A stretch of 36,117 nt of DNA from Octopus bimaculoides (Eukaryota): contig NC_068986.1 in assembly GCF_001194135.2 (NCBI RefSeq), positions 83,262,749-83,298,865 of the forward strand. Reading direction: 5' to 3'. Shown one piece after another: positions 1 to 32,700 of the stretch (position 1 is its first letter; every line of letters begins with the position of its first letter). The translations under genes were made by a program, and so were the position numbers. The notes under the pieces were generated by a model. The model saw only the letters and a program-made list of their open reading frames with translations, was not told the DNA's origin and ran no database searches.

Positions 1-1198
1 GGAAGAAAGAGGAGGAAACAAAAAAAGAGGGAAAAAATAGTCCCAGTAGAGCTCTCGCAAATTTAGTATTCAGCATGCTGCAGTTTACCTGGAAGAGTTA
101 TTCAATGAGCAGCTCGTCTTCCGTACGTATAGTTTTCATTTTTCTCTAAATAGCAATATCTATTTAAAGATTTTTTTTTTATTTTCATAAATCATTATTA
201 CCTTTATATGTTTTTTCAAATAATTTTTCATCTCAAAATCATGTTTTTCTCGTTGTTAGCAGATTTACTGACAATGTTATTCGAATTATCGCTAAGGACA
301 AAAAAGTCATGTCATTTATTTTCGACGTTAGTCCATTGAAATAGATAACTCACCTAAATAGTGATCGATTTCTCTATCATTCTAATTTTATTTATTATTT
401 TTTAGCTTCTTTCCATAACACATATAATATTTAATGAGTATATATGCCAATACTCAACATGCAATAGATCATATTTTACTGATTTGTAATCATTACCGAC
501 AAACACACGCACATGTCTTTATCTGCATACGTGCAATTGAGATTATTTGATCAATTATTATCGACATATGTTGCTTTTGTGGATGGAGTATATTGCCAGT
601 TGTAGCAACAAAGATTTTTAAAATTAAGAAAAATAAGAACTATCATTTCTGTTTGGTTCTCTTTATGAAAATATTGATAACTAAATAGGCATAGTTCATG
701 GGTTACTTGTGTTAACTTGCGACTGATTAAACATGAATAGAATAACCTTGCTGTTGCGTAGGTCATTTTACCATAATATTGAGGAATATCGAATTGTTTT
801 CTTTTCCTTTAGCATGACACCATTTATTAATATAAATTATGCAGCTAATATTACATTAACGTTTTTCGGACAAATGAAAGGACATGACACGTGCTAATCC
901 CGTTACCAATTATTCAGTTTATTACTAGCCGGTATTCTAGATCAGTGTCTACTATTTGAGGTCCACTAGTTTAAGCGCCCATATAACCCCTTATAACATT
1001 TTATTTTTTTGGAATTTTCAGAAAATGTCGGCGAATTTGTGTTCTACACCCGGAAATTCATACTATTATGCAAAAAAAAATTAAAGATTTTTGTGTATGG
1101 TTTAAGGGCTATTTAGATGCTATTTTTAGTGCATCTCACGACCACCTGGTACCTTCTTTTCTTTGTCACTGGTGTATTGATGTTTTTCAATATCTTTC

Positions 1199-3939: not shown

Positions 3940-4950
3940 AAAAGTTATTCATGATAGCGTAGTGCCTTAGCCGTATTCAAACATCACAATTTGGATTTCT
4001 CTTACTCCAGCTGCTGTAGCAAACTCATTGAGTTTCTTGAGGACATCTCCTGATGGTAGCTCATGTGTGCATGTATCTTGACTTTGCTAAAACCTTCAAT
4101 TCTGTGCCACGCAAATGACTCCTATCAAAACTTTGTGCAACAGGTGTGAAAGATAATCTCTATAACTGGTTGAAGCCCTTCGTTTTTGGTCGAAAAGCGG
4201 TAGTCAGGGTTCTAGGACGTATGAGATAACATCTGAGGTACCACAGAGATCCATTCTTGAGCCCATTGTTTGATGCATATATTAATGACATGGACACCAA
4301 CTTGAATGTTACAATATTGAAATATGCAGATGACACCATGTCGTACCTTGAGATAAATAGAACAGATCCTATATGCTATAGATTTTTCCAGCAATTAGAC
4401 CTGGACATAATGCAGTAATGGATTACTGACTAGAAACTCAAGCTAGCTGTGGACAAGTGTGTTGTCATGCATTTTGAGAGGAAAAACTCAGCCTTTTTCG
4501 AGCGAGATTGTTGCCAGTGCCCCTGGACTGGCTCTTGTGCGGGTGGCACATAAAATACACCATTTTGAGTGTGGCCATTGCCAGTACCGCCTGACTGGCC
4601 TTCGTGCGGGTGACACGTAAAAGCACCAACTACACTCTCTGAGTGGTTGGCGTTAGGAAGGGCATCCAGCTGTAGAAACTCTGCCAAATCAGATTGGAGC
4701 CTGGTGTAGCCGTCTGGTTTCACCAGTCCTCAGTCAAATCGTCCAACCCATGCTAGCATGGAAAGCAGACGTTAAACTATCATGATGATGATGATTTACA
4801 TAGTTCCTCAGCAACACCAATCATAAGAAGTCTGTTAGTAAATGTGACCTGGGTATTATTGTCAACAGTGATCTGCGTTGGACAAACCACATCTCTAAAG
4901 TTGTCAAGAAGGCCTAGGGTGTCTTAGCATCATTCAGTAAGGCCTTTGTC
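3940..4950 (+). mobile_element. Decayed CR1/L2-clade LINE reverse transcriptase fragment, interrupted by an RTE 3'-end insertion
   Basis: Broken frames give VYLDFAKTFNSVPRK, EVPQRSIL..., YINDMDTNLNVTILKYADDT, VDKCVVMHF and, after 4795, KCDLGIIVNSDLRWTNHISKVVKKA. These are CR1-type RT motifs with stops and frameshifts. Confidence 0.8.
4495..4795 (+). mobile_element. RTE-LINE 3'-end fragment (or RTE-tailed SINE) with (GAT)n tail
   Basis: Reverse complement of the elements at 13189-13492 and 17203-17457. Ends ...AACCCATGCTAGCATGGAAAGCAGACGTTAAAC...GATGATGATGAT. Sits inside the CR1 fragment. Confidence 0.85.
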
Positions 4951-5420: not shown

Positions 5421-5514
5421 GTTGATGCCAAAATTTGAAATCAATATTTAGAAATTGATGGCAAATGAAGTTAATTAAAAATGCTTTTCTTTTTTTATCA
5501 TTTTCTAAACACAG

Positions 5515-5652
5515 GTGCAAGCACAAATATGGTGCTTAAGAAGTTCATTGATGAAGTGACTATTGGTGTCAGTATGATTGACTAAAACTCTGGAAGGCAG
5601 TACTACAGCATATACCAATGATAGAAACCACTGAAAGTATAACTTATAATAG
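5515..5652 (+). other. Candidate 5' UTR exon of the PXYLP1-like gene
   Basis: Long pyrimidine tract ending ACAG at 5514 and donor AG|GTATGT at 5653. All three frames contain stops. Linkage to the downstream gene is unproven. Confidence 0.3.
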
Positions 5653-6384
5653 GTATGTTAGCCATATTTTTAGAAATAAGTTTATTTTATTTTGTATTGG
5701 AGGGCCTTGGATTAGCAGAGTTTTTAAAGCATTGGATAAAGTACATAGAAATATTTACTTTACATTTTGGGTTTAAATCAATCATGCCTAAGTGAACTTT
5801 ACCTTTCTTGCTCAGTATAAAGTACCAGTCAAGTGTATCAACTACCCCTTCTCCTCAAATAGTGACCTTGCACAAATGTTAGAAATCAATATCATTCTCA
5901 AGTTGGTTACTGATGTGCCTTTAATGTTTATATTTTGAATTCAAGCTATTGAAGTTTCTATGTAGCCTTTTGAACTACTGGAAATAGCAGCCAAATTTTC
6001 TTCCACTCACATCCTATTATCTTATAAAGGAAGGACTTTCTGAATAATGTAGTGTTGAGAAAAAAACTTAATAACCAGCTGCATGTTGAGACTAAACAAA
6101 GCTATTCAGAATTTTAAATAAATAGCATTGAAAAATTACTTTGATTCAAGGTGGTTTGTAAACATTTACTGTCAATATCACTAGATGTTTACAAGCTTAC
6201 TAGATTTTGTAGTTGACACATCTATAATTCAAGGAATTATGGGGCTATATGCAATGGTTCTGGATTCTTTGTGCTTGGTAAACTTCCAGAAGTAGTATAC
6301 TCTCATGTATTTGTTAGTTTTCTGCCGAGTATGTTATTCATATTTTCACCATTAGCTGATTTTAGAATTTTTAATTGAATGAAT

Positions 6385-6675
6385 TGACCCTAGGACTTAT
6401 TCTTTGTAAGCCTGGTACTTATTCTATCAGTCACTTTTGCTGAACTGCTAAGTTACGGGGACGTAAGCACACCAACACCAGTTATCAAGCGGTGATGGAA
6501 GGACAAACAAAGACATACACACATATGATGGGCTTCTTTCAGTTTCCGTCTACCAAATCCACTCACAAGGCTTTGGTTGGCTTGAGGCTATAGTAGACAC
6601 TTGCCCAAGGTGCTACACAGTAGGACTGAACCTGGGACCATTTGGTTGGGAAGCAAGCTTCTTACCACACAATCA
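6385..6675 (-). mobile_element. tRNA-derived SINE (CORE-like, octopus-type)
   Basis: Reverse complement of the SINE family at 11069-11440 and 12278-12600 (CTTGGGCAAGTGTC...GTGAGTGGATTTGGTAGACGGAAACTGAAAGAAGCC). Confidence 0.85.
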
Positions 6676-7023
6676 CTCCCAGGCATGACTGTGAAGCTTG
6701 CTTTACAACCACATGGTTTCATGTTCAATTCCACTGCAGGTCAACCAATGTCTTGTGAGTGAATTTGATAGATGGAAATTGTGTGGAAGCCTGTAGTGTG
6801 TGTCCCTGTCCAGTTTTCTTCAGGGTAACTAAGCAGTTACATGATGCTGGAGGTCATAGATTTCTCTTGGGTCTTGGTGGACATGAACTGCTTTCTCCTC
6901 ATCATGAAAGAATCTACCATCACACCACTTTGAGCTGCTTGGCAATGGCTTTCATTAACCACTGGGGTTGTCGTTGATGATGTCCTCAGCTGTGCTGACA
7001 ACATATGACCGTGGACTGCCCCT

Positions 7024-9234: not shown

Positions 9235-10315
9235 TACGCTTCCCTGATGAGTTAGAGTTGGATCAGAGCTGTCGGAGGAGTTAGCAGTGAAAGTTGGTGC
9301 ACACCAGGGATCTGTGTTGTCACCGTTGTTGTTGGCAATAGTGATTGACGTGGTGATGGAAAGTGCTAGAGAAGGATTGATAATGGAGATATTGTTTGCA
9401 GATGATCTCATTCTGATGAGTGAGATGATGGAGGGATTGAGGGAGAAGTTTTGGAAATGGAAGATGTTTGAAAGCAAGGGTTTGAAGGTAAACCTTGGGA
9501 AGACAAAGGTGATGGTGAGCAGGGTAGAAGGAGAAGTGTTAGTAAGGTAGATCCATGTGGTGTGTGTGGGAGGAAGGTAATGGCAACTGCAGTGTTGTGT
9601 GGAAAATGTGGGAAATGGATTCATGGTAGATTTAGGAAAATGAAGGTGACCCTAAGACTGGCAAGAGTTTTTATTTGTGGAAGATGTGAGAAAGGAGCTG
9701 GAGGGCTGGTGGAACCAGTGAGAGGGTTTTGTTATTTGGGAGATAGGGTGGATGTGAAGCAGTTGTGACAGCAAGAGTGAGACTTGGCTGGGTGAAGTTA
9801 AGAGAATGTGGAGCGTTATTATATGGGAAAAGGTTCGCTTTGAAGATGAAAGGAAAGGTTTATTGGAGCTGCATGAGATCTGCACTGCTGTATGGAAGTG
9901 AGACCTGGTGTCTGAGGGGAAGCAAAATGGCAATTTTGAGAAGGACCAAGAGAGCAATGTGTGGTGTGAAACTATTGGATAAAAGGAGGACTGAGGACTT
10001 AATGGGGATGATGGAGTTGGAGGAATCGGTGGAACAGCTGGCAAGGGCAAATGGAGTGCGGTGGTATGGACATGTGTTGAGGGGGGATGAGAATCATGCT
10101 CTGAGGAGAGCGCTTGAGTTTAAGGTGAATAGATCATGAAAGCGAGGTTGACCAAAGAAAACATGGAGGAGGACATTGGAAAGATTGGCTTGAGGAGAAA
10201 GGACACCCAAAACCGGATGAGATAGTGTGAGAGCAGTTGCTGTAAGAGTGAGGTAGGTCTGGCCACCCCCATTAACGGGGACAAACCCAGATTTAAAATA
10301 TTGGACATTGGTCAA
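9235..10315 (+). mobile_element. 5'-truncated RTE-clade LINE (RT C-terminal half and 3' end), frameshifted
   Basis: ORF pieces VKVGAHQGSVLSPLL, EILFADDLIL, GLKVNLGKTKVM, FCYLGD, ARVRLGWVKLRE, YGSETW, VRWYGHVLR are RTE/BovB-type RT and downstream motifs. Confidence 0.9.
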
Positions 10316-10668
10316 TTTTAGTCAAAGCTATGACTTTAAATCTGTCCAGAGTTACTTCTTTGGTTTTTTCCCATTGATAACAGTTAAAGAGCTAGAAACA
10401 CAGCATCTGGAAATCTGAAAGGCAGCAGCACTGGACAGATATGATGTTTTTACATCTTTTTACTAAAAGAGAATTTTTTCTCCAAGAAAATGGCAGTGAG
10501 TTTGCCTTTAGGTTACTGAAAATACTTCTAAAGTTAACCTTTTTTTAAATTTTTTTGACAGTTTTCAATGTTATTAGGAATAGTTTAATTGAACTTTTTT
10601 TTTTCCTCTATAAATTTCAGAATAAATGCATTCTGCTGTCGATACCATTGTTTTGGAAATGTTTAAGT

Positions 10669-10720
10669 ATGTTTTCTATGGTACATATTGTTTGCATCCT
10701 TGTTTGTATAATACTGATAC
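10669..10720 (+). CDS. PXYLP1: PXYLP1-like gene, first coding exon (signal anchor MFSMVHIVCILVCIILI; exon 10621-10720)
   Basis: Acceptor TTTCAG at 10620 after a long T tract and donor C|GTAAGT at 10721 (phase 1). The hydrophobic stretch continues in frame into the next exon (QLSICY), as expected for a type II Golgi protein. Confidence 0.65.
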
Positions 10721-11068
10721 GTAAGTATATTTTTGTAGTAGTTTTTTTTGTAAAATTTTTTTCTAATTTAAAAAATCTTGTTTATGAAAATGGTGAGGAA
10801 ACATGGACTGAAAGATTTTAGGAATTAAAATGAATAGTTTCAATCCTAACTTAACAATATTTATAATGTACTTTTAATCTTAGCTTCCATTTATATTTTC
10901 TTTGTTTATTTGTAGAGACTTGTATGCTTGGATGGAATTTTATAAACTATTTAAATATTGAATGAATGAGAATTTTCTAGACATTGACATTGAAAGCACA
11001 AATAACATGTAAGCTTAACTGTGTGTGGATATCAATAATAGCATGGCACTTGGTTTTGAGGTTTTTCC

Positions 11069-11440
11069 TGTGTGGTAAGTAGCTTGCTTACCAACCACAT
11101 GGTCCCAGGTTCAGTCCCACTGTGTGGCACCTTGGGCAAGTGTCATCTACTATAGCCTTGGGCCGACCAAAGCCTTGTGAGTGGATTTGGTAGACGGAAA
11201 CTGAAAGAAGCCTGTCATATAAATGTATATATATATATGTTTGTATGTCTGTGTTTGTCCTCCAACATCGCTTGACAACCGATGCTGGTGTGTTTATGTC
11301 CCCGTAACTTAGCGGTTCGGCAAAAGAGACCGATAGAATAAGTACTAAGCTTATAAGGAAAAAGTCCTGGGGTCGATTTGCTCGACTAAAGGTGGTGCTC
11401 CAGCATGGCCACAGTCAAAAGACTGAAACGAGTAAAAGAG
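11069..11440 (+). mobile_element. tRNA-derived SINE (CORE-like, octopus-type) in intron
   Basis: TGTGTGGTAAGTAGCTTGCTTACCAACCACATGGTCCCAGGTTCAGTCCCAC (B-box-like GGTTCAGTCC), then CTTGGGCAAGTG, an internal TA/TG microsatellite and the 3' GACTGAAACGAGTAAAAGA. Three copies in the window. Confidence 0.85.
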
Positions 11441-11797
11441 ATATAAATGACTTTTTAGCTTTTGTATCATTTACACAATGAAAGTATCTGAATTAGGCTA
11501 CTAAGCCATTTAAACCAAAAGTCTCCAAGTAAAATCTTTGTTAGGTTAAGAATTTTTAGTCTTACATGATATACAAAATTAGTAATTATATGTTCCAAAA
11601 CAAGTCTATTATAAAGTATTTTTCTACATAACAAAAATCAATAACTTTCTCAAAGTGAGGCACATGTTTGTGCATTTTTGTTTGTGACAGATGGGAGAGT
11701 GAAGAGGCAGTAAAGATAGTTTTTCACTGTTCATATAAAATGTAAATTTTCAGTTAATTGTTTTCACATATGGAACCTTGTGTTAATTATATTTCAG

Positions 11798-12019
11798 AAC
11801 TTTCAATTTGTTATAAATTAGTTTTAAAATCTTCAAGTGAAAAACTGCCAACAGATCAGTTCCAAAATTTTCAAGTAAAATACCATCAAAAGAGAAGTTT
11901 GTCAGTTATAAAGTCGTCATCATCTGAGAAACAAACACCATATAGAACACTCCTTCAGCATCCAAGAGTGATTAAAGCATGTGAAGGGTTTCGTGCAGCA
12001 AGATCTCAAAAATACAAAG
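11798..12019 (+). CDS. PXYLP1: PXYLP1-like gene, second coding exon (lumenal stem region)
   Basis: Acceptor ATTTCAG at 11797, an open frame (LSICYKLVLK...HPRVIKACEGFRAARSQKYK-G) and donor AAG|GCAAGT at 12020. Phase 1 at both ends matches both neighbours. The Cys ~14 residues before the junction Gly parallels PXYLP1 'YCN...EG'. Confidence 0.7.
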
Positions 12020-12196
12020 GCAAGTTTTATTTTCTCTAAAATTTCTGTTTATCAAAATGAAGTCAAACTATGTATGGCACTACTCATTTGCATAATGGTT
12101 GGAATTTCATGGTTTGATATAATTACTAGGGTAACATGTACATATATTTATGTGTATGTAAGTATCATTGTCATCATTGATTCCATTATTGCTCAA

Positions 12197-12263
12197 TAAA
12201 CTTGAAACCACAAATTTTACGATCACAAGTCAGCTGCCTTAACCACTGGGCCATTGTGCCTCC
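12197..12263 (-). mobile_element. tRNA-like SINE head fragment
   Basis: Reverse complement GGAGGCACAATGGCCCAGTGGTTAAGGCAGCTGACTTGTGATCG...GTGGTTTCAAG has an A-box (TGGCCCAGTGG) and a degenerate B-box but no complete cloverleaf. Confidence 0.55.
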
Positions 12264-12277
12264 ACACACATACATAT

Positions 12278-12600
12278 TGTGTGGTAAGTAACTTGCTTGC
12301 CAACCACATGGTTCCAGGTTCAGTCCTACTGCATGGCACCTTGGGCAAGTGTCTTCTACTATAGCCTTAGGCCAACCAAAGCTTTGTGAATGGATTTGGT
12401 AGACGGAAACTGAAAGAAGCCCGTCATATATATATGTTTGTGTGTCTGTGTTTGTTGGTGTGTTTACATCTCCATAATTTAGCAAAAGAGAACGATAGAA
12501 TAAGTACTAGGCTTACAAAGAATAAGTCTTGGGGTCGATTTGTTTGATTAAAGGTGGTACTCCAGCATGGCCGCAGTCAAGTGACTGAAACAAATAAAAG
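12278..12600 (+). mobile_element. tRNA-derived SINE (CORE-like, octopus-type) in intron
   Basis: Same family as 11069-11440. Confidence 0.85.
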
Positions 12601-12842
12601 AATATATATACATATATACACATACATATGTACATACATATATATATACATGTATATATATACGCACATATATATATATATACATGTATCTATATATGCA
12701 TATATATATATNNNNNNNNNNNNNNNNNNNNNNNNNNNNNNNNNNNNNNNNNNNNNNNNNNNNNNNNNNNNNNNNNNNNNNNNNNNNNNNNNNNNNNNNN
12801 NNNNNNNNNNNTATACATACATATGTATATGATATAATGAGA

Positions 12843-13100
12843 ACGCATGGCATAGTGGTTAGGGTGTTGCACTCACAATTGCAAGATTGGTTACAATTCC
12901 TAGGCCAGGTGGTGCGTTATGTTCTTCAAGAAAATACTTCCTCTTACATTGCTCTCCAATCACTTTGACACCAGACATGTGGTATGCTGTGTACCTGTTC
13001 AGGCAATGTTGCTTTGATGGAGGGAGTGAGCTAGTATATAACACATACATTTGATCACTATAGACAAGCTGAACCCTCATGTCTTTGATGGGAGAGTTCA
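12843..13100 (+). mobile_element. Second tRNA-headed SINE family, decayed
   Basis: Starts GCATGGCATAGTGGTTAGGGTGTTGCACTCACAAT (A-box-like TGGCATAGTGG). The 3' limit is approximate. Confidence 0.45.
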
Positions 13101-13188
13101 TTTTACAAACATACATACAAACAAATGTAAGAAGTGCTTTCACATGAAGCACCAGGTCCTGAGCCACTGATGTAGCTTCATGATGATG

Positions 13189-13492
13189 ATCATCATCATC
13201 GTTTAACGTCCGCTTTCCATGCTAGCATGGGTTGGACGATTTGACTGAGGACTGGTGAAACCGGATGGCAACACCAGGCTCCAGTCTGATTTGGCAGTTT
13301 CTACAGCTGGATGCCCTTCCTAACGCCAACCACTCAGAGAGTGTAGTGGGTGCTTTTTCGTGTCACCCGCACGAAAACGGCCACGCTCGAAATGGTGTCT
13401 TTTATGTGCCACCCGCACAAGCCAGTCCAGGGGCACTGGCAACGATCTCGCTCGAAAATCCTACAGGAGCCAGTCAGGCGGTACTGGCAACG
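13189..13492 (-). mobile_element. RTE-LINE 3' end with (CAT)n tail on + strand, runs into gap
   Basis: Near-identical to 17203-17457 and the reverse complement of 4495-4795. Confidence 0.85.
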
Positions 13493-14268
13493 NNNNNNNN
13501 NNNNNNNNNNNNNNNNNNNNNNNNNNNNNNNNNNNNNNNNNNNNNNNNNNNNNNNNNNNNNNNNNNNNNNNNNNNNNNNNNNNNNNNNNNNNNNNNNNNN
13601 NNNNNNNNNNNNNNNNNNNNNNNNNNNNNNNNNNNNNNNNNNNNNNNNNNNNNNNNNNNNNNNNNNNNNNNNNNNNNNNNNNNNNNNNNNNNNNNNNNNN
13701 NNNNNNNNNNNNNNNNNNNNNNNNNNNNNNNNNNNNNNNNNNNNNNNNNNNNNNNNNNNNNNNNNNNNNNNNNNNNNNNNNNNNNNNNNNNNNNNNNNNN
13801 NNNNNNNNNNNNNNNNNNNNNNNNNNNNNNNNNNNNNNNNNNNNNNNNNNNNNNNNNNNNNNNNNNNNNNNNNNNNNNNNNNNNNNNNNNNNNNNNNNNN
13901 NNNNNNNNNNNNNNNNNNNNNNNNNNNNNNNNNNNNNNNNNNNNNNNNNNNNNNNNNNNNNNNNNNNNNNNNNNNNNNNNNNNNNNNNNNNNNNNNNNNN
14001 NNNNNNNNNNNNNNNNNNNNNNNNNNNNNNNNNNNNNNNNNNNNNNNNNNNNNNNNNNNNNNNNNNNNNNNNNNNNNNNNNNNNNNNNNNNNNNNNNNNN
14101 NNNNNNNNNNNNNNNNNNNNNNNNNNNNNNNNNNNNNNNNNNNNTATATATGAACAGTAAATTGTTTTTCAAAACTTATATAAATTTTAATTTATTGTGA
14201 AATTGAATGAAACTATGCCATTCATATTTATCTTTTCAACGTTTGATTTATTTTTCATTCAAATATAG

Positions 14269-15449
14269 GTAATTTCAACAGGCTTTTTTCTGGCTACAAA
14301 CTTGTTCAAGTTCATACTTTCTTAAGTTCTGGACAAACTCTACCAGAACAAATACCTGCACTCAGATCACCAATGATTACCTGTAAGATAACAAGTCTCT
14401 TGTCAGATAATCCTAAAGTAAGGTTATTTGAAGAGAGTGTTTCTTTACACCAGAAGCTTCAAAAAAGACCCAGTAGTTTAAAAATATTCCCACCAACATC
14501 TAGAAAACATGTTTGCTTTTTAGGGGACCTTACACCTTATGGAATCCTTCAGCAAATTGAGCATGGTGAATTTTTGAGAGAAGTTTATAGTCATAGGCTG
14601 AAAAATACAGCTCTTGAAAAGTTGTTTACTATACAGACCATTCCAGAAAAACTTCAGTACCAAAATTCTCTTGCTTTTGCAGTTGGCTTTCTTACACAGA
14701 AACAATTTAGTCGTATACATGTTGGTAAATCTCTTCCAGATTTTGCTTCTAGGTCCATGAATAAACATCTTAATTGTCCTAAATTAAATATGTTTTCTTC
14801 ACAAGTAGAAAATGCTATAAATTCTGGTCAGTTTATTTTTAAAGAAGCACATCCATCCACCAAACGTTTAGTTAGCCTTTTTAATTTTACAGATATTATT
14901 AAATCTTCTTCATTGGAAATTCTTCAAACTACGTTATCTTACTTGTGCAATAAAATCTCTCCTGTTTGTCGTAAGGATAAGCCTTGCATAAGAATTACAT
15001 CCAAGGGGTTAACAGAAACTGTCAGAATGACTGACAACTACTTCAAAAATCTCATTGTAAACCCTTTGTTTACTGAAATTTCAAAGTTGTCCACATTTCC
15101 AGCTTTTCAGGGAATTATGGAAAGTATCGACAATAGCAAAATATTTTTCCATACATATTCCTCCAAGCTTTCTTTTCTATTGTATTTGCTTCGAACTCTG
15201 GGGCTCACAATTACTGAAAGGCCTCTGTCAGTGAGTCATTTCATTTTTGAAGTTTATGCTAATAGTGAAGGCTCAAAATTTTTCCGTATCCTTTTTAATG
15301 GTGAAGATTTAACAAATCAAGTGCTCTCTTGTAAGAATACTGCAGCTTCATTTTCAAATCTCTGTCCGTTAAGCATTTTAAATAATTTTATTACTCATGG
15401 GATATTTAAACAATTTAAAAGTCAAACCTACACAGAAGCATGTCAGTAG
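14269..15449 (+). CDS. PXYLP1: PXYLP1/ACPL2-like histidine acid phosphatase domain, terminal exon; catalytic motifs absent
   Basis: Acceptor ATAG at 14268 and a 1.18-kb open frame. From recall of human PXYLP1: GYKLVQVHTFLSSGQTLP vs FKLVSVHVFIRHGDRYP; CFLGDLTPYGILQQIEHGEFLREVY vs CEMGELTQTGVVQHLQNGQLLRDIY; NSLAFAVGFL vs SGLALLYGFL; YSSKLSFLLYLLRTLGL vs YSAHDVTLSPVLSALGL; FRILFNGEDLT vs VRILYNGVDVT; LCPLS vs MCPLE; YTEACQ* vs YYDACH. Spliced product ~484 aa vs ~480 aa in human. Confidence 0.9.
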
Positions 15450-17202: not shown

Positions 17203-18655
17203 CATCATCATCATCATCATCATCGTTTAACGTCCGCTTTCCATGCTAGCATGGGTTGGACGATTTGACTGAGGACTGGTGAAACCGGATGGCAACACCA
17301 GGCTCCAGTCTGATTTGGCAGAGTTTCTACAGCTGGATGCCCTTCCTAACGCCAACCACTCAGAGAGTGTAGTGGGTGCTTTTACGTGTCACCCGCACGA
17401 AAACGGCCACGCTCGAAATGGTGTCTTTTATGTGCCACCCGCACAAGCCAGTCCAGGNNNNNNNNNNNNNNNNNNNNNNNNNNNNNNNNNNNNNNNNNNN
17501 NNNNNNNNNNNNNNNNNNNNNNNNNNNNNNNNNNNNNNNNNNNNNNNNNNNNNNNNNNNNNNNNNNNNNNNNNNNNNNNNNNNNNNNNNNNNNNNNNNNN
17601 NNNNNNNNNNNNNNNNNNNNNNNNNNNNNNNNNNNNNNNNNNNNNNNNNNNNNNNNNNNNNNNNNNNNNNNNNNNNNNNNNNNNNNNNNNNNNNNNNNNN
17701 NNNNNNNNNNNNNNNNNNNNNNNNNNNNNNNNNNNNNNNNNNNNNNNNNNNNNNNNNNNNNNNNNNNNNNNNNNNNNNNNNNNNNNNNNNNNNNNNNNNN
17801 NNNNNNNNNNNNNNNNNNNNNNNNNNNNNNNNNNNNNNNNNNNNNNNNNNNNNNNNNNNNNNNNNNNNNNNNNNNNNNNNNNNNNNNNNNNNNNNNNNNN
17901 NNNNNNNNNNNNNNNNNNNNNNNNNNNNNNNNNNNNNNNNNNNNNNNNNNNNNNNNNNNNNNNNNNNNNNNNNNNNNNNNNNNNNNNNNNNNNNNNNNNN
18001 NNNNNNNNNNNNNNNNNNNNNNNNNNNNNNNNNNNNNNNNNNNNNNNNNNNNNNNNNNNNNNNNNNNNNNNNNNNNNNNNNNNNNNNNNNNNNNNNNNNN
18101 NNNNNNNNNNNNNNNNNNNNNNNNNNNNNNNNNNNNNNNNNNNNNNNNNNNNNNNNNNNNNNNNNNNNNNNNNNNNNNNNNNNNNNNNNNNNNNNNNNNN
18201 NNNNNNNNNNNNNNNNNNNNNNNNNNNNNNNNNNNNNNNNNNNNNNNNNNNNNNNNNNNNNNNNNNNNNNNNNNNNNNNNNNNNNNNNNNNNNNNNNNNN
18301 NNNNNNNNNNNNNNNNNNNNNNNNNNNNNNNNNNNNNNNNNNNNNNNNNNNNNNNNNNNNNNNNNTCTCTGTACATGGCTCGCACAGCTCTCACTAGCCA
18401 TTCTTCTATCCCAAGTTTCCTCATTGACCACCAGATAAGGGATCGGGGGACCCTGTCAAAGGCTTTCTCCATGTCAACGAAAGCCAGGTACAGAGGTTTA
18501 TCCTTGGCTAGGTATTTCTCTTGCAACTGTCTCACTAGAAATAAGGCATCAGTAGTGCTTTTACCTGGCACGAACCCAAACTGCATCTCATCTAAATTGA
18601 TTCGCTCCCTAATTAGTTGGGCTATGACCCTCTCTGTAACTTTCATAACCTGATA
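17203..18655 (-). mobile_element. 5'-truncated RTE LINE (RT fragment 18366-18655; 3' end 17203-17457; middle in gap)
   Basis: Minus strand KVTERVIAQLIRERINLDEMQFGFVPGKSTTDALFLVRQLQEKY...AFVDMEKAFDRVPR, uninterrupted. The RTE tail lies on the same strand across the gap. Joining across the gap is an inference. Confidence 0.8.
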
Positions 18656-29640: not shown

Positions 29641-29705
29641 CTCTGATGACCACACACACACATGTATATATATGCACACATATATACATACACACACACA
29701 CACAC

Positions 29706-32700
29706 AGATATATGCTCCTCAACCGGGGCTACCGGATGGGCTGAAAGACCAATTCTATGACACCCTCTTGCAAACTACCTCGTTGATGAGTCACAGGGAC
29801 CTTCTCTTTGTGGCTGGTGACTTCAATGTTCATGTCGGACGTCGTGCTGGAGGCTATGGCTTCGGTTCCCGCAACGAGGAGGGAACCAGACTGCTGGAGT
29901 TCTGTGATGCAACCGATCTTATGGTTTGCAATACCAACTTCAGGAAACCTGCCTGTCATCTAGTCACCTACCGATCCGGCAGACACTCTAGGCAAATCGA
30001 CTACATCCTCGCCAGAAATAGGGAAAGAGGGCGGCTTATAAATGCCAAAACCTTCTCTGGCGAAGAATGTACCCCTCAACACAGATTAGTAGTAAGCGAC
30101 TTCAGGATCAAGGCAAAATGGGTGCCCAGAAGTAGACCAGCTTGGAAGAGAAGGGTGTGGAAGCTTAAAGACCCTGCAAATGGACGAAGATTTAGAGACA
30201 TGTTACTCAAAGCATTTGACGAAATAGAAGGGGATATAGCATCATATAACGTGGAAGACAATTGGAGATTTCTGCGGGACAACCTGCTGAGAGCCACCAA
30301 CCAGATCTGTGGCTGGTGTAAAGTCCCCTCTCGACCCAGAGTAATGTGGTGGTGGAACAAGGAGGTAGACAGGGCTATTAGACAAAAGAAACAGGCTTGG
30401 AAGGACTGGCAGAACGGTGGTAGCAGGGAATTGTACCAATCTGCCAGAAAGGAAGCTAGGCGACAGGTTTATTTAGCCAGAGGGGAAGCAGATAAAAGAT
30501 TTGCCAATGTCCTGCGCCGTGAGGACCAAAGACATGAGATATTTCGTGTTGCAAGACAGTGTAGGAGAGAGAATAGTGATGTCGTAGGAGAGAAATGTGT
30601 TCACATGGATGATGGTACGCTTGCACTAAATGAGGCTGCAAACAAAGAGGTCTGGAGATGCCACTACAATAGATTGCTCAATAAAGAGAATGAATAGGAG
30701 AAAGAGAGTCTGCCATATGTTGACCCAACAGAGGGACTAGCTATCCGAGGTGACAGTACCATGGTAGATAAAGCAATTAAGAGTATGAAGACAGGGAAAG
30801 CCCCCGGCCCATCAGGAATCACTGCAGAGATGCTCAAAATATCTGGCAGTGTCAGCTATAGCCTAGCCACCCATATTACGAACCAGGTGATACACGAAGG
30901 AGTCATACCCAATGACTGGTGTAGCAGCATCATAGTCAACTGCTACAAAGGTAAAGGTGACGCTTTAGATACAAATAATTACAGAGGCATCAAGCTGTTA
31001 GATCAGGTTATGAGTTACGGAGAGGGTCATAGCCCAACTANNNNNNNNNNNNNNNNNNNNNNNNNNNNNNNNNNNNNNNNNNNNNNNNNNNNNNNNNNNN
31101 NNNNNNNNNNNNNNNNNNNNNNNNNNNNNNNNNNNNNNNNNNNNNNNNNNNNNNNNNNNNNNNNNNNNNNNNNNNNNNNNNNNNNNNNNNNNNNNNNNNN
31201 NNNNNNNNNNNNNNNNNNNNNNNNNNNNNNNNNNNNNNNNNNNNNNNNNNNNNNNNNNNNNNNNNNNNNNNNNNNNNNNNNNNNNNNNNNNNNNNNNNNN
31301 NNNNNNNNNNNNNNNNNNNNNNNNNNNNNNNNNNNNNNNNNNNNNNNNNNNNNNNNNNNNNNNNNNNNNNNNNNNNNNNNNNNNNNNNNNNNCTCTATGC
31401 TGATGACCTTGCACTAATTGCGGAGTCACTATCAGAACTAGAGGAGAAGTTTCAGGTGTGGAAGCAAGGACTAGAATCGAAGGACCTTAGAGTCAACTTA
31501 GCTAAAACCAAAATCCTGATAAGTAGGAAGGTAGAAAAAACACAAACCCCTTCAGGTAGATGGCCCTGCTCAGTATGTAGAAAAGGTGTAGGTAGTAACT
31601 CTATAAGATGTACCAAGTGCAAGCTATGGACACATAAGAGGTGCAGCAATATCAAAGGCAGGTTAACTAGGAAGTTAGCTTTTGTATGTGGCAGATGTTC
31701 AGGTGCAATAAACACTGTAAGCAAACAGGAAACAACTGTCTCATTCCAGGGAGAAAAACTAGAGGTAGTTGATAGCTTCTGCTATTTGGGTGACCAAGTT
31801 AGTAGTGGGGGTGGGTGCACTGAAAGTGTAGCTGCTAGAATAATAATAGCCTGGGCAAAGTTTAGAGAGCTCTTACCTCTGCTGGCGACAAAGGGACTCT
31901 CACTCAGGGTAAAAGGCAGACTGTATGATGCAGGTGTACTAACAGCCATGCTACATGGCAGTGAAACATGGGCTGTGACTGCTGAGGACATGTGTAAGCT
32001 CGCAAGGAATGAAGCCAGTATGCTCCGATGGATGAGTAATGTCAGTGTGCATATACCACTGAGTGTAAATGATTTAAGAGAAAACTGGTTATAAGAGGCA
32101 TTAGTTGTAGTGTGCAAGAGAGAAGACTGTTGGTATCATCATAGAATTTGTAGAGATAAGGTTAGCTATATAAAGAAGTACTGATTTCTAATTGTGGAGG
32201 TAATCTTTTGAATGGGGTAGACCCCAGGAAGACATGGGACAAAGTGGTGAAAAATGAACTTCACAGAGGAGATGACAAGGGACTGAAGCAGGCAATTTGC
32301 TGTGCTTGAGAAGACATGTCAAGCTAAGTAAAATCATGGCCATTCATACATACAGACATGTCCTTTTTGGCCATACTTCCACCTCCCCTGGCACACACAC
32401 ATAATTTGGTCCTCCGGCAAAACACCTCCACCACCCACTAGGCCCCCACTCTCCCTCACACGCCTCTACATATCCACATATATCCCCTTCCCAACCACTC
32501 CAATTCCTCTCATCATCACTTGCTATCTCTATCTCCCTTCACACTCTTATGGAATATCTCCTCTATTCCCTCTATACTACTTATATCCCCCTCCACTGTT
32601 CCCTGTGAGCAGGCCCTCTCTCCTACTCTGACTTGTCTCTATCTAACTCTCTCCTTCCTTGTCCAACTGGGGTAGCCAAGTATCTCCTCTGTAGTAAGAT

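Follow-up and report, generated by a model that had tools for sequence, protein, structure and literature searches.

What becomes of a gene that keeps the exons and the predicted fold of an enzyme when the residues with which that enzyme works have gone? The question is raised by a locus of Octopus bimaculoides in a window of 36,117 nucleotides (the whole stretch of DNA analysed; assembly GCF_001194135.2, contig NC_068986.1, positions 83,262,749 to 83,298,865 of the forward strand), where an earlier note had described a pseudophosphatase resembling 2-phosphoxylose phosphatase 1 (PXYLP1 or XYLP, formerly ACPL2). The gene is not a pseudogene, as it has no stops or frameshifts, keeps the parental introns and shows a ratio of nonsynonymous to synonymous substitution rates (dN/dS) below 1. 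Its product is predicted, from the loss of all canonical residues, to be catalytically dead. The locus is very probably a pseudoenzyme under selection, a paralogue of PXYLP1. The octopus pseudophosphatase of the earlier note is real; its scope was drawn too narrowly, as the clade to which it belongs spans bivalves, gastropods and cephalopods.

The loss of catalytic residues was judged on aligned columns (PROSITE-style patterns proved unreliable, the second of them finding no more than 16 out of 61 active PXYLP1 sequences). At these columns the nucleophile histidine, both arginines of the RHGxR motif, the substrate-binding arginine of SRT and the HD pair with its phosphate-binding His and proton-donor Asp are all replaced, and the three degenerate motifs lie exactly where the earlier note had placed them (Table 1). 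Among 110 representatives of active PXYLP1 the R, H and R of RHGxR are conserved at 0.98, 1.00 and 0.99, and the H and D of the HD pair at 1.00 each. In the SRT columns the active clade has R at 1.00 and T at 0.96, and the same position is variable in the clade of dead copies, none of whose 30 members shows RHGxRxP at the aligned columns. In active PXYLP1 conservation reaches 85% or more at 46 columns. Of these the cysteine, glycine and core ones persist in the dead clade, with ASR..FE.Y, NG.D.T and the C-terminal C among its retained core motifs, and R111, H112, D114, R115, T216, R220, T221, D311, H391, D392, T394 and F445 are lost from it. Most of the lost positions vary within the dead clade; the exceptions are position 112, where Pro prevails (0.73), and position 394, where Phe does (0.82). 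Ten of the model's cysteines fall in columns whose conservation is 85% or higher in the dead and the active clade alike, and most of the cysteine framework is thus kept. The exceptions are C251 and C259 (window about 14745-14771), which are conserved in both clades and replaced (by A and L) in all the cephalopod dead copies; from their joint absence they were probably lost as a pair forming one disulphide.

The gene model is complete over its coding part, which amounts to 1455 nt, that is 484 codons and a stop, with 0 internal stops, exact splice sites and junctions covered by RNA, as expected of the intact full-length protein first proposed. The window has a G+C content of about 27% and is AT-rich, repeat-rich and interrupted by many gaps. 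With about 8% of random codons being stops, the chance of a 392-codon open exon is by arithmetic about 1e-15. The main start, MFSMVH, is common to the window protein and its O. vulgaris counterpart (P0001). The junction 10720>11798 (GT..AG) is crossed by seven raw RNA reads and two contigs, and a 2388-nt transcript contig (X11) joins the end of exon 2, ...CAAAAATACAA(AG), directly to 14269. The GC donor of the last intron, at 12020-12021, recurs in O. vulgaris (12045-12046 of locus L001), whose orthologous locus has no N, the same three coding exons and no extra exon. Two assembly gaps (12712-12811 and 13493-14144) fall within that intron and one further gap lies just past the stop codon; the 3' untranslated region (UTR) runs past 15455 into the next gap, and the X11 contig continues for no fewer than 567 nt downstream of 15455.

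Upstream, positions 53-176 of the X11 contig and 1-80 of a 2295-nt contig (X7) align to 1-124 of the window, and the sequence behind 124 continues in the contigs at 5517. Given the 2-nt overlap, GT, the exon ends at 122 and its donor occupies 123-124. The second non-coding exon is flanked by an acceptor (cacAG/G) at 5513-5514 and a donor (GTATGT) at 5653. As the contigs include two 5' exons and the X11 contig extends 52 nt upstream of the window start, the gene has at least five exons and begins before the window. The exon with the start codon also holds two out-of-frame upstream ATGs (10623 and 10656), whose reading frames extend over the main start codon and, in the spliced transcript, terminate soon after the beginning of the next exon. 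They could form a regulatory upstream open reading frame.

Reads and contigs over exon 3 show no base differences from the assembly and no A>G change at a raw depth of 1-5x, which is too low for judging RNA editing. A-to-I editing could in any case not turn AGT TCT into Arg-His, as the earlier note had argued. As the reads agree with the assembly and RHG and HD are absent from them, assembly error does not account for the dead motifs. Transcript contigs and raw reads moreover show that the gene is spliced and expressed.

By sequence comparison PXYLP1 is by far the closest homologue, with pairwise E values of about 1e-30 and 23-24% identity over about 420 aa; Argonauta PXYLP1 matches the window at E = 3e-26 over 417 aa (tblastn). 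Every active PXYLP1 match carries the Pfam domain His_Phos_2 (PF00328). Against this profile the octopus protein reaches 14.5 bits (E = 0.023), under the gathering cut-off of 23.6, and 17 of the 30 members of the dead clade match it at E < 0.01. The single octopus protein has no sequence match in the PDB; the profile of the clade, searched against PDB sequences, finds ACP6 at E = 5.6e-14. The Pfam comparison proposed in the earlier note thus falls short of the threshold, and the phylogeny proposed with it does give a separate, PXYLP1-related clade with an active paralogue alongside.

A profile search across 1.84 billion cluster representatives yielded 364 homologues. Motif columns were judged in 153 sequences, and taxa were taken from the best 150 of the 364 homologues, named members only. 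RHG(D)R, (S)RT.QS and (S)GHD are all present in 110 of the 153 sequences, and about 34 have none of them. In a neighbour-joining (NJ) tree of 376 columns, from which the motif columns had been removed, the 30 dead representatives split from the 112 others in 100 of 100 bootstraps, and 109 of those 112 have intact motifs. The window protein groups outside bona fide PXYLP1, as a sister or separate clade, and the subtree of dead copies roughly follows class-level taxonomy. Five sequences outside the mollusc dead clade (P0104, P0130, P0144, P0146 and P0114) have degenerate HD and/or RHG motifs (among them HE, GLD and GQV). Three of these fall inside the active clade, which suggests that catalysis was lost separately in other lineages. 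Another homologue, P0014 (876 aa), carries two tandem PXYLP1-like domains, the first with RHGE and AHD and the second with RHGK and NHD.

A word-indexed search with the octopus protein gave only that of O. vulgaris (90% identity; UniRef name '2-phosphoxylose phosphatase 1') and three at about 45%, two of which derive from spliced transcript contigs; a second one, with the 30-member clade alignment, gave four proteins. The O. vulgaris protein and the three at about 45% share the dead motifs. These three appear to be from non-octopod cephalopods, as the tree places them as the sister group of Octopus at 100/100.

All named members of the dead clade, for which taxon names were obtained by cluster look-ups, are molluscs. 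They comprise Octopus among the cephalopods, Batillaria, Littorina, Aplysia, Haliotis, Patella and Lottia among the gastropods, and Mya (two copies), Mercenaria, Mactra, Potamilus, Ylistrum and Solemya among the bivalves. Canonical PXYLP1 is found alongside in Patella, Haliotis, Littorina, Aplysia, Lottia, Mya, Mercenaria and Ylistrum. The active paralogue whose coexistence had been left as a check is present in cephalopods too: the octopod Argonauta hians has one (P0183, 81% identity) with RHGDR, SRTYQS and SGHD intact, and the cluster of P0023 includes the PXYLP1 of Acanthosepion (Sepia) pharaonis.

The exon structure tells how the two copies arose. The active gene of Argonauta and the dead gene of the octopus have three coding exons each, and the two introns between them are of phase 1. 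The last intron splits an equivalent Gly codon, which lies upstream of the RHG position by 16 codons in the active gene and by 19 in the dead one. The active gene of Patella has the same exon layout. These shared intron positions indicate a duplication at the DNA level and not retroposition, and the presence of dead copies in bivalves, gastropods and cephalopods places it before those classes diverged. According to the fossil record that divergence is Cambrian or earlier. In Patella caerulea the active gene (SNE40_014752) and the dead one (SNE40_014755) are three locus tags apart, and for Haliotis asinina and Littorina saxatilis each pair of dead and active genes shares a chromosome-size contig, which hints at an ancestral tandem duplication. 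Tandem linkage is not established: in Patella and in Argonauta alike the dead gene was not found within 10 kb of the active gene, and in Patella the two are more than 10 kb apart.

The predicted structure agrees with retention of the fold. AlphaFold2 modelled the exon 3 domain from a 103-sequence alignment with a predicted local distance difference test score (pLDDT) of 90.9 and a predicted template modelling score of 0.91; with five cephalopod sequences alone the pLDDT was 34. A Foldseek search against the PDB is led by ACP6, the histidine acid phosphatases of Francisella and Legionella and prostatic acid phosphatase (template modelling scores 0.54-0.70, probability 1.00), and each of the top 50 matches is a histidine acid phosphatase, a phytase or MINPP, at probability 1.00. 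No PXYLP1 structure was among the matches of the sequence, profile and Foldseek searches of the PDB. The model puts the degenerate motifs at the family sites of RHG (after strand 1) and HD (strand-helix), and the alpha/beta core with its helical cap, the branch 2 fold of the histidine phosphatase superfamily, is predicted to be kept, as had been proposed. The N-terminal anchor, MVHIVCILVCIILIQLSIC, begins in coding exon 1 and ends in exon 2, with a Kyte-Doolittle hydropathy maximum of 2.78 at residues 4-22, and this 19-residue hydrophobic segment is strong in all the cephalopod orthologues and in active PXYLP1. Exon 2 also holds a poorly conserved stem followed by a conserved LLxHPxV..C motif. 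Anchor and stem together would correspond to the usual type II Golgi layout.

Selection on the coding sequence was estimated by the Nei-Gojobori method on codon alignments, with bootstrap. Between the window species and O. vulgaris dS is 0.086 and dN 0.044, giving a dN/dS of 0.51 (confidence interval 0.29-0.86; 0.8% of replicates at 1 or above). Three other cephalopod pairs gave 0.14-0.32, and the comparison of Octopus with another cephalopod, in which dS is saturated, gave 0.25. All the bootstrap confidence intervals lie below 1. The ratio of near 1 named beforehand as the mark of a pseudogene was accordingly not found, and the values of 0.14-0.51 indicate purifying selection. Moreover the two octopuses share 95.6% identity over exon 3 vs about 88-91% over most flanking non-coding blocks (non-coding blocks of the window as a whole are about 88-93% identical to the O. 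vulgaris chromosome locus). In matched pairs of taxa the dead copies are 32, 27, 24 and 24% identical where the active ones are 44, 36, 34 and 39% identical, respectively; in the Mercenaria-Mya pair the two identities are equal. Judged from these comparisons, the constraint on the dead copy is real, and weaker than that on the enzyme.

The coordinates of the gene and of the other elements are collected in Table 1. One short interspersed repeat has copies at 11068-11447 and 12278-12604 and also at 4522-4792 and 6375-6679, in introns and upstream. It is met in thousands of RNA contigs at a contig depth of 1e5-6e5, which marks it as a very high-copy, heavily transcribed element; no Rfam family was found at gathering score anywhere in the window, this repeat included. 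The fragments of long interspersed nuclear element (LINE) type are interrupted by gaps and comprise an endonuclease/reverse transcriptase reading frame (Exo_endo_phos_2, weak), RVT_1 and a PHD-finger-like reading frame. In addition, a repeat with the reading frame ...LQLDALPNANHSESVVGAF... lies at 13189-13492 and 17210-17457, adjoining two different assembly gaps, and those gaps probably mark collapsed or unresolved copies of it.

Table 1. Coordinates of the PXYLP1-like gene, its degenerate motifs and other elements in the window (slashes mark exon boundaries)
Feature	Position	Strand	Remarks
SSGQTLP in place of RHGxRxP	14325-14345	+	R111S, H112S, D114Q, R115T; aligned columns
KLQYQN in place of (S)RTYQS	14649-14666	+	Arg to L220, Thr to Q221
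KL in place of HD	15165-15170	+	K391, L392
First 5' non-coding exon seen, incomplete in window	1-122	+	Transcript contigs X11, X7
Second 5' non-coding exon	5515-5652	+	2388-nt X11 and 2295-nt X7 contigs
Exon with start codon, including 5' UTR	10621-10720	+	Contigs, 7 raw reads, frame
Coding exon 1	10669-10720	+	Donor AC/GTAAGT; ATG at 10669; residues 1-17 plus one base
Coding exon 2	11798-12019	+	Residues 18-92; GC donor AAG/GCAAGT
Last intron, phase 1, GC-AG	12020-14268	+	Holds both gaps plus one repeat copy
Coding exon 3, last	14269-15449	+	Residues 92-484; stop TAG 15447-15449; whole phosphatase-like domain
LINE-type retrotransposon fragment	9765-10139	+	
LINE-type retrotransposon fragment	17360-18646	-	
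LINE-type retrotransposon fragment	29672-32094	+	

Taken together these data are best explained, on balance, by a conserved, expressed and non-catalytic paralogue of PXYLP1 that may be a partner in the pathway of the glycosaminoglycan linker. The course of events would have been as follows. PXYLP1 was duplicated at the DNA level before cephalopods, gastropods and bivalves split; one copy then shed all six residues that bind or attack phosphate, keeping anchor, stem, predicted fold and most cysteines, and has since been under moderate purifying selection beside the working enzyme. The dead copy would reside in the Golgi lumen like PXYLP1 and act by binding, not by catalysis, its putative partner being active PXYLP1 or glucuronyltransferase-I (GlcAT-I, B3GAT3). 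Such partnering could tune the rate at which xylose 2-phosphate is removed from the linker, comparable to the action of FAM20A on FAM20C. Histidine acid phosphatases are commonly dimers. With these dimers and the oligomers of PXYLP1 and B3GAT3, a dead subunit that tunes linker dephosphorylation would be the most economical model. XYLP oligomerises with B3GAT3, with activity up more than 16-fold (reviewed in PMC12118331).

The specific role of a regulator of the glycosaminoglycan linker, argued by analogy, has to be taken as tentative. Still more speculative is the wider proposal of an ancient regulatory subunit of molluscs, in which dead PXYLP1 would pair with active PXYLP1 and/or GlcAT-I and set the persistence of xylose 2-phosphate. 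If true, this subunit would set how many glycosaminoglycan chains are made and which ones. It would be a pseudoenzyme switch in the manner of FAM20A, working from the opposite, phosphatase side of one and the same phosphorylation cycle, and to our knowledge it would be the first functional pseudoenzyme with the histidine-acid-phosphatase fold. The role of competitor for the phosphorylated linker, also considered in the earlier note, is the least likely reading, as every phosphate-binding residue is gone and phosphate binding is unlikely once the positively charged pocket has disappeared.

Several points weigh against the explanation by a dead linker partner. Its mechanism is argued from analogy, and the former pocket, varying as it does among the dead copies, speaks against a conserved ligand pocket and points to no interface. 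The dN/dS of the octopus pair is fairly relaxed, and the dead copies evolve faster, octopods and other cephalopods being 45% identical in the dead copy vs 81% in the active one. In the raw-read runs expression is low, by arithmetic about 0.25-1.4 reads for each kb and million reads sampled. In addition, the active paralogue of cephalopods is shown in Argonauta and one other cephalopod only, the AlphaFold alignment is made up mostly of active PXYLP1 sequences, and the tree, built by NJ with no maximum-likelihood counterpart and no outgroup, leaves the root of the dead clade within PXYLP1 unplaced.

Some of the same observations would fit a neofunctionalised protein that has left linker dephosphorylation altogether, either a binding module or an enzyme with relocated residues, serving a mollusc-specific secretory or extracellular task. 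This is the strongest rival, a serious possibility although not the favoured one. It is in keeping with the complete loss of the phosphate-binding residues and the variation of the old pocket, with six residues conserved in the dead clade alone (K236, F238, K245, K283, F359 and F394), with a fast-evolving clade that is older than the divergence of the classes and has extra copies in Mya, and with its confinement to one phylum as far as the named members show. However, no alternative nucleophile is conserved, and the clade-typical His of AFLHG is missing in the octopus (AFAVG); moreover nothing ties the dead clade to another pathway, and the anchor-stem-domain layout of PXYLP1 is kept.

Far less probable is a transcribed relic that has lost its function and is drifting towards a pseudogene in octopods. 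The dN/dS between the two Octopus species and the low expression could be so explained, and so could the absence from cephalopods of C251 and C259, although the joint loss of these two would be expected for a dispensable disulphide. Against it, the reading frame is intact in both octopuses and in other cephalopods, the clade spans three classes of molluscs, hardly any bootstrap replicate reaches a ratio of 1, and exon 3 is better conserved than most of the neighbouring non-coding DNA.

An artefact of assembly or annotation (an exon hidden in a gap, a chimeric gene model, or motifs altered by sequencing errors), to which the two gaps within the gene span and the one just past the stop codon might point, is refuted for the coding sequence and deserves next to no credence, since transcript contigs cross every junction, reads match the assembly, and both a gapless orthologous locus and independent transcripts of further species lead to the same protein and motifs. 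What the window lacks is limited to part of the 3' UTR and of the first 5' exon.

A dead paralogue of PXYLP1 retained in this way bears on a little-studied step of proteoglycan synthesis, and its interest comes from the age and breadth of the clade. Dead copies are named in the databases '2-phosphoxylose phosphatase 1(-like)', 'PXYP1-like' or hypothetical, and such pipeline labels over-predict enzyme function in mollusc annotations and metabolic reconstructions. Non-catalytic copies retained for so long can mark those parts of PXYLP1 that are needed beyond hydrolysis, such as for complex formation, localisation or glycan recognition, and a regulatory layer of glycosaminoglycan biosynthesis becomes testable in molluscs. 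The available reviews of pseudophosphatases centre on proteins belonging to the protein tyrosine phosphatase family, and to their catalogue the locus adds a case with the histidine-phosphatase fold and a predicted lumenal location. Literature searches gave no paper that ties PXYLP1/ACPL2 or a histidine acid phosphatase to pseudoenzymes, or that names members of the clade, and the dead clade looks like an undescribed family of a well-known kind, the pseudoenzymes.

Among known systems PXYLP1 itself stands nearest. The octopus protein resembles it in length, in the order of anchor, stem and phosphatase-like domain, in the C-terminal Y..AC, in the positions and phases of the introns, in the predicted fold and in the ten shared cysteines. 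It differs in being without RHGxR, the SRT arginine and HD, in its separate clade (100/100), in its faster evolution and in a score below the gathering threshold of His_Phos_2, and canonical PXYLP1 coexists with it in the same groups. The best structural and PDB sequence-profile matches, which are ACP6, prostatic acid phosphatase and bacterial enzymes (4JOB, 1ND5, 3IT0, 5CDH), are more distant at 12-15% identity; they are active enzymes with RHG and HD, and lack the Cys-rich cap and the anchor of PXYLP1. Among pseudophosphatases, STYX, MK-STYX, the inactive myotubularins and the D2 domain of PTPRU have mutated motifs and act by binding (PMC8269279, PMC10211241). These classical cases have cysteine-based folds of the protein tyrosine phosphatase or dual-specificity phosphatase type, are cytosolic and often still bind phospho-ligands, whereas the dead PXYLP1 has the histidine-acid-phosphatase fold, is predicted to be lumenal and has lost the phosphate-binding arginines.

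The closest functional parallel would be the pseudokinase FAM20A, which partners and activates FAM20C and is a paralogue of the xylose kinase FAM20B. Like FAM20A, the octopus protein is a paralogue, probably of the secretory pathway, that has lost the catalytic residues and was retained by selection, and FAM20A offers a model of how a dead copy can regulate a live one by forming a complex. FAM20A belongs to another fold and enzyme class, its partnership is shown by experiment where that of the octopus protein is putative, and it is a vertebrate protein, whereas the dead clade has so far been seen in molluscs only.

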